This document shows positions 16,703 to 19,700 of a stretch of 64,000 nt of DNA, one piece after another. Within the stretch, counting starts at the first letter, position 1. Every line of letters starts with the position of its first letter. The position numbers were made by a program, and so were the translations under genes. The stretch comes from Mizuhopecten yessoensis (taxonomy: Eukaryota). Under the pieces are notes generated by a model. It was given only the letters and a program-made list of their open reading frames with translations. It was not told the DNA's origin and did not search any database. The stretch lies in the NCBI RefSeq assembly GCF_002113885.1, contig NW_018407755.1, positions 333,343-397,342 of the forward strand, read 5' to 3'.

Positions 16703-19700
16703 TTAACATTTAGCATTTGGTGCTGCTGGAAGCTGCCCACGTGTAGCCATAGATGACAGACCTGTTGAAAAAAGGAACATTTGATAGACACATGTTTTAT
16801 AGAATATAAAATGCAGATATGTCGTAGGCATAACGTAGACATGACGGAGTGTACCGCAGTGTGATAATAATTAAATTTATACTGTAAAACCTCTATATAA
16901 TGTCGCTTATCTATCACGATAAAATGACCATTGTAAATGCTATGTATCGATATAATGCCCCTTATTCATCATAACAGCTTCGACATAATGATCTTCCTTT
17001 ATAATCATACAGTAAAACTTTGATAGTATACCCCTGCTTTTCATTGTACAGTGAAACCTCGCTATAATGTCGAATGTTTATCACTTAATATTACATCCTT
17101 GATATAATGCCAACTGTTTATGATAAAGAAAAACACTTTGATAATACCCCTCATGTGGTACTTTTGAGTAAATAAAGGTATAATGTTATTGGGTTTTTTA
17201 TCATCACTAAACAGCAAAACTTTGATATATTTCCACTTAGACTTTTTTGAAATTTGGAAATGTATTTATTATGTGCTATCTACAAGATAGCAGCCACGCC
17301 CTTCTGTTGATCAAATATGGATATCTCGTATATATTGTTTATAAAACTGGAGTTGCGATTTTATCATCAACAGTTCAGAGCCAAAAATTCCTATTATAGT
17401 AACAAAGAGTTTATGTTAATCAAATCAATGTTCCTGCCGTTAAAATAAACATTTAAAGAATATAAAACACAGTGTCCACGTCCGTCTGTCGATCTGATAC
17501 AAAGGATACTTTATATATACATTTATTAAAAAAAGGATTAAATGTTCATGTGAAGTAAGTAAATATAGAAAAAATAAGATTTAACGACCGACTTAAAAAC
17601 TAGCTGCTTTCACCCTTCACAGGGCTCTTCAGGTTTATTTCACAAGAACAACTTCGTGACGTCACAATTACATGTCATCACACTACAATTGTAACGTGAA
17701 GTCACGAAGTACACACGATTGGTGGACAAACTAGCGTAAAATTTACTTAGGCCTGTCGAGACTTGGTTTTAGTATTTTGGTCAATTGGTCTTCTTTCTTT
17801 TCTCTTAGAAATATATATATACAAAAAGGACCCGTACCATTTTAATGGTTAAATATCAAATATTAAATATTAAAGACATGACACAAAAGTTTTAGCACTT
17901 TCACCTCTTTAGAGGTTCATCAGGAGAATAATTCAGGAAAACAAATATTGAAAAGTTCGAGGGAATTTCTTGAAAGGAAAGATAACGTCACATAAAAAAA
18001 TAACAAATAATTAACGAGATCGTGATATAAAAAAAAAGGACAAATAATATATTCGACCTTTAAAAACTGTAGTAAATTGTAGTTGAAATTGTACCTGCGA
18101 GCGCTGATTGGAAGCCGGCATTATAGTCGCAGGTGACTTCGTTCTTGGTGTAATCAGATCGCTTGTCAGCGTAGTTATCGCCCTGGTCTGGGCCTCCAAC
18201 CAAAGCACCCTTTAGAACATGTGGGTTGGCGCCACCACTGTTGTAGTCGTTCCATCCGCAGTTGGCGCCGGGACAAGAACTTTAAAAAACAGGTATAGGT
18301 GGGACCATAGTTAGAATCTGTTTGAGACTAATGTGGTAGGAAAATAATGAAAACTAAACTTATTTTTTCTTTGGCATTTATTTCAGGGCATCACATTTGT
18401 CAAGTTAATATCCCTTTGTAATTTATCACTGCTTTTTTCGAAACGTAGCTCAATCATCAACTTGTTTTCATTTTGTTTTTTGGCACATTTAGACGTACTA
18501 AGTACAGAATGCGTGCGATCACATTTCCACGCTATAAATACAATGTACAAGTATACGTGTGCACGCTTCCTTATGTATATCACGACCAATTGAAATATGC
18601 TGCTTTTAAATTACCATTTATTTCTTTGTGACCAATCTGTTCATAACTTTTTATTACATATGATGAATCTCTGTCGAGAGAACAAAACAAATCTGTCAGT
18701 TTTTAATGTGTGCTTATATTGCGGCTAAACATCTCATCAAATAAACCGTTTATCAATATAAGAAAACATTAACCTCTATCATCCATACTGAATACCGGGA
18801 AAATTTCGCCTTGTCAAACTTTCGCCCTTCGCCCATAACACAATTTTCGCTGAGTGTTAATATCACCCTTTACATAGAATGAATATGTTCATAATGTTGT
18901 TTACTTATGTAGTAGGACGAAGAATAGTGATAAAGATACTGCCGTCGCTGGGCCTCGAACCCGCGACCCTTGGCTCTCCAGCCCGATGCTCTACCGCTGA
19001 GCTAACGGGAAATTCTTTACAGCTGCCGCTTGTAAGGTAACGTAATGAATGCACATCTTTTACACTTATATTCACTCTATTGCTAAATTCGCCCTCATAA
19101 CGGTGGACGAAATAGGCGAAAATCAAACTGAAGCGAAATGTTCCCGGTGTGCAGTATTTACATACGACATAATCATACAATATATACCTTCCTCTGTGGT
19201 GGGGTTGTTTGGGGTAATTGCTGCCGAAGCCGATCTCAAAACTCATGTGTTGTCTATTGTCACCAAGGATATAATCGATCTGGGACAGAGCGAATGTCTT
19301 ATAGTCGTTACCACCGATACCATCCTCGGCCGCCATCAGTGCCACGAAGGCTGCGTTAGCTGTAAAATAAGTAAGTGTCGTATTTATAAATCGGTCCGTG
19401 TACTCCATTACCTAAATCAGCCGCCCATATTTATAACCATACCTTATAAGGCTGTTAAAGGAGGGCCTTTATTACCAGCACTGCTCAATTCCTGCAATTA
19501 CCTCATCTGAACTTAAACGTTGTGTAACTGAAATCGATCATAATTACTATAATATGCAGGTCAGTCATTTGGACGTGCACTTGAACAGACGAGTTTTTGA
19601 CAAAGCACTTCAGCTGATACAATTTTTCTGGAAGTCGATATCATTTTGAATAAATTTTCAAAAAATGCATAAAGTAATAACTAAATGAATAAAAATATAA

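Follow-up and report, generated by a model that had tools for sequence, protein, structure and literature searches.

The last intron of a GH9 cellulase gene of the scallop Mizuhopecten yessoensis carries, on the transcribed strand, two hammerhead ribozyme cores, which are most probably (at roughly three chances in four) separately derived, decayed fragments of hammerhead-bearing repeats that have no function at this locus. The gene lies on the minus strand of a 64,000-nt stretch of contig NW_018407755.1 (positions 333,343 to 397,342), called the window below, and the cores are denoted HH1 (upstream) and HH2 (downstream). An earlier reading made from the letters alone (the sequence-only reading) had noticed two co-oriented cores on the transcribed strand, and sequence analysis confirmed both exactly where they had been placed. 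It was right in kind, since both motifs are genuinely of the hammerhead type found in Penelope-like elements (PLEs) and retrozymes. It had also taken them for a tandem pair delimiting a ~290-nt RNA able to excise itself and circularise. This was not upheld: the flanks of the two cores are non-homologous, no tandem period exists, the two repeats are present at different depths, HH1 is defective, and the RNA between the cores is not enriched.

The source of the two units would be the non-autonomous retroelements with minimal type I hammerheads that accompany PLEs and retrozymes without long terminal repeats (non-LTR retrozymes) in invertebrates. Each unit would comprise a hammerhead core, an unalignable tail of ~62 nt and a TCC(T)n end beside TA-rich DNA, and may have been inserted as a 5′-truncated retro-copy at a TA microsatellite. 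HH2 would come from a very abundant family that also bears a long hairpin, and HH1 would be reduced to the 31-nt core of its family. The 291-nt spacing and the same orientation within the intron would then be happenstance, and both units would be transcribed only because they ride in the pre-mRNA and would be lost when the intron is spliced out, no ~290-nt RNA being released.

Hammerhead Cores and Their Host Intron

The bare pattern CUGANGA-N8-30-GAAA occurs eight times in the window against 3.3 expected and is hence common. If a flush stem II of at least 4 bp is required between CUGANGA and GAAA, exactly HH1 and HH2 are left, against 0.053 expected per window, and none of 300 dinucleotide shuffles reached two. 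With an optional one-nucleotide bulge allowed, four cores are found (0.15 expected), the additions lying at 6911 (+) and 54332 (−). The invariant hammerhead core (C3 U4 G5 A6 N7 G8 A9, G12 A13 A14, A15.1-U16.1) is complete in both HH1 and HH2, and H17 is A in both. A search of the whole window with Rfam gave no match at the gathering threshold. In E-value mode, subthreshold hammerhead matches were obtained for HH1 (Hammerhead_3, 19.3 bits, E 0.38, gathering 48.5) and HH2 (HH9, 14.7 bits, E 2.4, gathering 52) amid equally weak noise such as an L20 leader and snoRNAs. Rfam models are known to miss minimal hammerhead variants.

Each of the two additional cores has features of its own. The core at 6911–6961 (+) bears Penelope hallmarks, namely a bulged A after A9, a G10.1-C11.1 pair and a 6-bp stem II with an 18-nt loop; it continues as GAAA-CG-UC without loop 3, has a stem I of ~5 bp, and is flanked by inverted repeats of ~26 nt near 6714–6739 and 6969–6995. 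Rfam at gathering gave no match for it. The hammerhead-like core at 54310–54332 (−) consists of CUGACGA, a bulged A, GGGC-UAA-GCCC and GAAA, with a poor stem III and cleavage triplet (GGUU). Upstream of it, at ~54345–54370, GTGACGT / GTCACGTGAC palindromes recall the GTGACGTCAC hairpin that precedes HH2.

The host gene was identified as a GH9 cellulase by a Pfam search carried out exon by exon, with no joined protein model (Glyco_hydro_9, E 9e-12 to 2e-18 across exons). Run X1, available as contigs only, behaves as RNA from a cellulase-expressing tissue. Its spliced joints 18279>19188 and 16759>18093 read CT..AC, which corresponds to GT..AG in the orientation of the gene, and it shows a poly(A) loose end at 16663. 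The depth of ~8,000–15,000 over the cellulase exons marks a very highly expressed gene. The joints together with the GH9 exons bear out the position of the cores in the sense strand of the terminal cellulase intron (Table 1).

Structure of HH1 and HH2

On the minus strand, HH1 is composed of a C, CUGAUGA (17923–17917), a 5-bp stem II with a 4-nt loop (17916–17903), GAAA (17902–17899) and G-UG-C-UA ending at A17893. The 10.1-11.1 pair is A-U, and stem II is the sole helix: there is no stem I, the 5′ flank UUCUC standing opposite AAACU, and a 2-bp stem III would leave a loop of 2 nt, too small to be allowed sterically or by the energy model. HH1 had been described as a core with a broken stem I; the core does lie there, with no stem I and no formable stem III. 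On this structural model, HH1 would be unable to cleave. A type III topology with a stem I hairpin at 17936–17924, as implied by the Rfam alignment, was considered and rejected: it provides 3 bp only, with two mismatched closing pairs and no upstream partner for stem III. In other copies of the HH1 family, ~13 extra nt directly after UA form a possible 3′ strand of stem I; by eye, they are missing in the window before the similarity resumes, which is no more than suggestive.

HH2 begins with AAAUAAAC, followed by CUGAAGA (17632–17626), a 5-bp stem II with a GUGA loop (17625–17612), GAAA (17611–17608), G-CAG-C-UA up to A17601, after which cleavage is predicted, and GUUUUUA. The A/U-rich stem I comprises 4 bp, a U·U mismatch and one more pair, stem II opens with G10.1·U11.1, and stem III has 2 bp and a 3-nt loop, CAG. 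To call this core fully paired was therefore an overstatement, given the mismatch, the 2-bp stem III and the G·U at 10.1-11.1, although all three stems do exist on paper. The hammerhead fold, at −1.7 kcal/mol, lies 9.5 kcal/mol above the minimum free energy (−11.2), and in the minimum-free-energy fold C3–G5 are paired with loop 3. The letter at 17594 in the family consensus would extend stem I by one pair, so that the window copy appears slightly degraded. Because stem III is weak, a compatible dimer partner is lacking and the active fold is disfavoured, HH2 would cleave at best very inefficiently.

A heterodimer of HH1 and HH2 formed via stem III was also tried as a candidate and rejected: the segments AGUGCU (6 nt) and AGCAGCU (7 nt) are not complementary, and cofolding produces no helix III of the hammerhead type and no gain in energy.

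The long hairpin that had been noticed between the cores was recovered both by an inverted-repeat search and by fold energy. Its arms (17651–17665 and 17696–17710) are 93% complementary, and it folds at −26.6 kcal/mol with a z of −3.9.

Abundance and Spread of the Repeats

Run X15 has the profile of whole-genome DNA: single-copy sequence, whether intronic or intergenic, is covered evenly at a depth of ~8.6. Over 17464–17771, its summed contig depth amounts to 8,000–10,400 (1,400–23,900 at single positions, ~13,000 over the hairpin at 17690), with loose ends at 17529, 17636 and 17639. Nearly all X15 contigs and reads that overlap this region deviate from the window at the same six sites and with the same letters (17546 T>C, 17594 T>A, 17643 C>A, 17690 T>A, 17700 A>C, 17716 C>A). 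The repeat that contains HH2 is thus a worn member of a family of the order of 10^3 copies, its DNA depth exceeding the single-copy baseline several hundred to a few thousand times, although contig depth is not a copy number. As for HH1, its 31-nt core (17894–17924) is common to other loci, where reads and contigs continue into unlike sequence on both sides, and the depth of 512 in the bin with HH1 corresponds to about a few hundred copies of this 31-mer.

Other copies in the X15 contigs tell how these families are spread. Some are joined via ATATAT (joint 17608>17563) or start inside the hammerhead at 17608; at the loose end at 17636, (TA)n directly precedes the match. Such starts inside the hammerhead, together with the TA junctions, make up the pattern of 5′-truncated retro-copies in TA microsatellites. 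Dispersed and often 5′-truncated multi-copy fragments with a microsatellite bias, as known for Penelope-like elements, are therefore present, and TA-rich DNA also follows both units in the window. At other loci, HH1-type cores stand ~41 nt apart (17928>17895, 7 nt between), and an HH1-type core is joined to an HH2-type tail (17930>17563), so that short hammerhead arrays and chimeric arrangements exist in the genome.

A BLASTN search of 17400–18100 against the window revealed no other copy. Exact-pattern scans of metagenome contigs (HH1 and HH2 cores) and of viral contigs (HH1 core) were blank, as expected for an animal repeat.

Relationship between the Two Units

The rival explanation that survives best, though it is improbable, regards the two units as a fossil dimer of one non-LTR retrozyme, i.e., as two monomers of ~291 nt that have diverged until only the cores and TCC(T)n can be recognised. 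The cores have the same orientation and lie 291 nt apart, and the TCCTTTTT copies that follow them are separated by 293 nt, both distances being within the 170–400-nt retrozyme range (PMC7229834). The core architecture is common to both, including a 14-nt stem II element ending in GGU and a stem III of the form G..C-UA, and the stem II differences between HH1 and HH2 are compensatory. Against this, no homology was detected between the flanks: BLASTN found none, and local alignments of the 250-nt upstream and downstream flanks stayed within the shuffle expectation. Homology of the 62- and 63-nt tails was tried and rejected (alignment z 0.9). Tandem Repeats Finder (TRF) reported no period of ~290 nt, and no direct repeat was found around the cores. 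Nothing like the hairpin upstream of HH2 precedes HH1, the other copies of the two families are piled to very different DNA depths (512 for HH1 vs 8,000–10,400 for HH2 in X15), and homology extends ~70 nt past the cleavage site in the HH2 family only.

Beyond the core, the two units have in common only TCCTTTTT, located 62 and 63 nt past the predicted cleavage sites, and the TA-rich DNA after it. This 8-mer occurs only nine times on both strands of the window, so that its co-linearity in the two units is unlikely to be due to chance. It suggests a common element layout made up of a hammerhead, a variable tail and a TCC(T)n terminus. The copy after HH1 would possibly mark the 3′ terminus of the HH1 element. 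A third motif of this kind, TCCTTTTT(TTTT)-ATAT, is found at 18033–18040 (−), 55–60 nt from the start of the last intron, and no hammerhead precedes it. It may stem from an element of this type that has been truncated further, or be coincidental.

Several points weigh against the interpretation of HH1 and HH2 as two independent, decayed repeat fragments. Both are devoid of the published hallmarks of PLE minimal hammerheads, i.e., the bulge after A9 and the G10.1-C11.1 pair, as judged from their sequences. The nearly equal spacing of the cores (291 nt) and of TCCTTTTT (293 nt) could reflect a very old tandem dimer. The abundance of the families is read from contig depth, which, as said, does not count copies, and the metagenome and viral scans retrieved no other copy that might provide a consensus, boundaries, target-site duplications or a link to a PLE bearing a reverse transcriptase (RT). 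Finally, it is from structure that the two cores are predicted to be inactive.

RNA Evidence on Excision and Cleavage

In run X1, the depth over the intron is ~9–13 throughout, against ~8,400–14,700 over the exons. Between the cores (17711–17923) it is 10.1, equal to that in the rest of the intron, so that this segment does not accumulate. The sequence-only reading had put forward read ends or circles at the UA sites near 17601 and 17893 as a test of its proposal. No back-joint between 17601 and 17892 was present in X1, though contigs and poly(A) libraries show circles poorly. Likewise, no pile-up of read ends was observed at any position, 17600/17601 and 17892/17893 included, although X1 contigs cannot show ends and X19, the raw-read run with some cellulase signal, is very shallow here. 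Breaks of X1 contigs at 17582 and 17923 were considered as evidence of cleavage and rejected, as both sites are repeat boundaries, at which assembly graphs are interrupted. Run X24 represents poly(A) RNA without cellulase reads (exon depth 0). It contains ~85 reads at 17594, 6 nt past the HH2 site, with no end pile-up listed; since they carry the family-consensus letters and the cellulase exon depth is 0, these reads come from other genomic copies.

These data bear on a second rival explanation, according to which the cores are a functional pair: both would cleave the cellulase pre-mRNA to give an RNA of ~290 nt, maybe circular, or cleavage by HH2 would compete with splicing of the terminal intron and thus tune the mRNA. 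Such a role would be in line with the intact invariant positions of the catalytic core in HH1 and HH2, with the sense orientation in a very highly expressed gene and with the three stems that HH2 has on paper. It is nevertheless very unlikely. In HH1, stem I is missing and stem III cannot form, while the active fold of HH2 is far from the minimum free energy and has no dimer partner. The inter-core RNA is as abundant as the rest of the intron, with no back-joint and no pile-up of starts or ends (which X1 contigs cannot show), and X24 family reads lie 6 nt past the HH2 site without a listed end pile-up. In addition, minimal hammerheads cleave poorly even in vitro and are thought to need dimers formed via a palindromic stem III (Cervera & de la Pena 2014, PMC4209133).

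A narrower proposal, to which we give an equally slight chance, is that HH2 alone retains slow self-cleavage in vivo, perhaps aided by a host factor, and severs a fraction of the abundant cellulase pre-mRNA upstream of the last exon and the poly(A) site. If so, a domesticated repeat would cap the output of a digestive cellulase or would seed a small intronic RNA. Finally, that AT-rich intron DNA mimics the hammerhead consensus here by chance, as might be supposed from Rfam scores far below gathering and from the commonness of the bare pattern, is effectively refuted by the counts obtained once a paired stem II is required, with or without the bulge option, and by the multi-copy presence of HH1 and HH2 in the genome with a conserved core.

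Comparison with Known Hammerhead Systems

Metazoan genomes contain thousands of minimal type I hammerheads, which are mostly dispersed, highly variable single motifs derived from truncated Penelope-like elements (PMC4209133). PLEs carry their hammerheads near the 3′ ends and insert preferentially into microsatellites, (TA)n being one of the favoured targets (Craig et al. 2021, PMC8557442). About 5000 type I hammerheads are found in mussel genomes (PMC7229834), and bivalve retrozymes are tandem 350–390-bp repeats with type I hammerheads devoid of loop–loop contacts (Cervera & de la Pena 2020, PMC7229834). Animal retrozymes have been derived from the pseudo-long terminal repeats (pLTRs) of PLEs, and vertebrate introns are depleted of retrozymes (Li et al. 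2026 preprint, 10.64898/2026.07.22.740005). No mention of hammerheads in scallops was found in a literature search.

HH1 and HH2 resemble the minimal hammerheads of PLEs in the short stem I and in the very short, near-palindromic stem III segments, implying dependence on a dimer, as well as in the hundreds to thousands of dispersed copies with heterogeneous flanks and TA-microsatellite junctions and in the location of the hammerhead near the 3′ end of the unit. The near-palindromic segment is, however, the only structural hallmark of PLE minimal hammerheads that they share: no nucleotide is bulged between A9 and 10.1, at 10.1-11.1 HH1 has A-U and HH2 has G·U where PLE hammerheads have G-C, and stem II has 5 bp, not 6–8. 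The window core at 6911, by contrast, does have the PLE hallmarks. Unlike PLEs proper, in which an open reading frame (ORF) for RT and GIY-YIG lies between pLTRs, the two cores have only 291 nt between them, with neither a pLTR duplication nor any other direct repeat, and no ORF of at least 130 aa lies near them besides read-through of a GH9 exon.

With non-LTR retrozymes, such as the 350–390-bp repeats of Mytilus, the units have in common the type I topology, the 2-bp stem III, the low GC content, the absence of an ORF and a self-paired segment (the hairpin); the 291-nt spacing is within the range of monomer sizes, and the host is a bivalve. Nevertheless, tandem homologous monomers of 170–400 bp with one hammerhead each are not found here, since the flanks cannot be aligned and TRF gives no period, and no circular RNA signal from the locus was seen in the RNA contigs, which show circles poorly. 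A sense-strand hammerhead in an intron of a protein-coding gene is reminiscent of the intronic HH9 and HH10 of amniotes, for which an action on the pre-mRNA has been proposed, and the best Rfam match of HH2 is indeed HH9. The amniote motifs, however, are single-copy, deeply conserved, canonical and highly active, with loop–loop contacts, whereas HH1 and HH2 are decayed members of repeats that score 15–19 bits. Hence, the two cores probably derive from the Penelope and retrozyme world, yet they lack the homologous tandem monomers that define a retrozyme and the ORF, pLTRs, bulge and G10.1-C11.1 pair of a PLE proper.

Taken by itself, the locus matters little; it is real but ordinary. It provides one more case of the hammerhead-bearing retroelement debris that is dense in bivalve genomes and that extends to the sense strand of introns in genes with high expression; the window alone has four cores within 64 kb. 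It also calls for caution, as two hammerhead cores in the same orientation at a distance of a few hundred nt do not by themselves make a retrozyme. Moreover, it points to a possibly definable mini-element of ~105–110 nt, consisting of a hammerhead, a tail of ~62 nt and TCC(T)n beside TA repeats.

Table 1. Features of the hammerhead-bearing intron and the adjoining exons (window coordinates).
Feature	Position	Strand	Description and evidence
Penultimate exon	18095..18279	−	C-terminal end of the GH9 domain; Pfam Glyco_hydro_9, E 9e-12, profile positions 410–444 of 444; joints
Last intron	16762..18094	−	1333 nt, GT..AG; donor and acceptor sequence; spliced joint at depth 3480 in RNA contigs and in 1 raw read; encloses HH1, HH2 and the hairpin
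HH1, hammerhead core fragment	17893..17924	−	CUGAUGA, 5-bp stem II, GAAA, G-UG-C-UA; sequence, shuffle test, Rfam E-value mode, DNA reads
TCCTTTTT after HH1	17823..17830	−	62 nt 3′ of the HH1 cleavage site, then (TA)5; co-linear with the copy after HH2
Multi-copy repeat (approximate extent)	17529..17720	−	Hairpin, HH2 and a ~70-nt tail ending in a T-run; X15 DNA contigs
Long imperfect hairpin	17651..17710	−	Upstream of HH2; contains the palindrome GTGACGTCAC; within the high-copy repeat
HH2, formally complete minimal type I hammerhead	17593..17640	−	Sequence; listed pairs; fold energy; HH9, 14.7 bits
TCCTTTTT(TT) after HH2	17530..17537	−	63 nt 3′ of the HH2 cleavage site, then TA-rich DNA; coincides with the end of the family-contig match (17529)
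Last exon	16663..16761	−	Final ~19 residues, TAA stop, AATAAA, poly(A) site; poly-T loose end before 16663 on the + strand

Other Features of the Gene and Its Surroundings

The first coding exon of the cellulase gene, at 25937–26200 (−), opens with a signal-peptide-like start followed by a stretch that resembles a carbohydrate-binding module. No Pfam match was obtained for this exon at E<0.01; presumably, the stretch is comparable to the N-terminal carbohydrate-binding module of molluscan GH9 cellulases.

Downstream of the gene, a short multi-copy segment at 15476–15518 accumulates reads from other loci, with shared differences at 15502 and 15503. The penultimate GH9 intron contains, at 18908–19006, a repeat of very high copy, with a DNA depth of ~15,000–18,000 against the baseline of 8.6, that is abundant in the RNA of all runs. 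As the flanking consensus of its other copies (GGGCTCGAACCCGTGACC) is tRNA-like, this repeat is probably a tRNA-derived short interspersed nuclear element.

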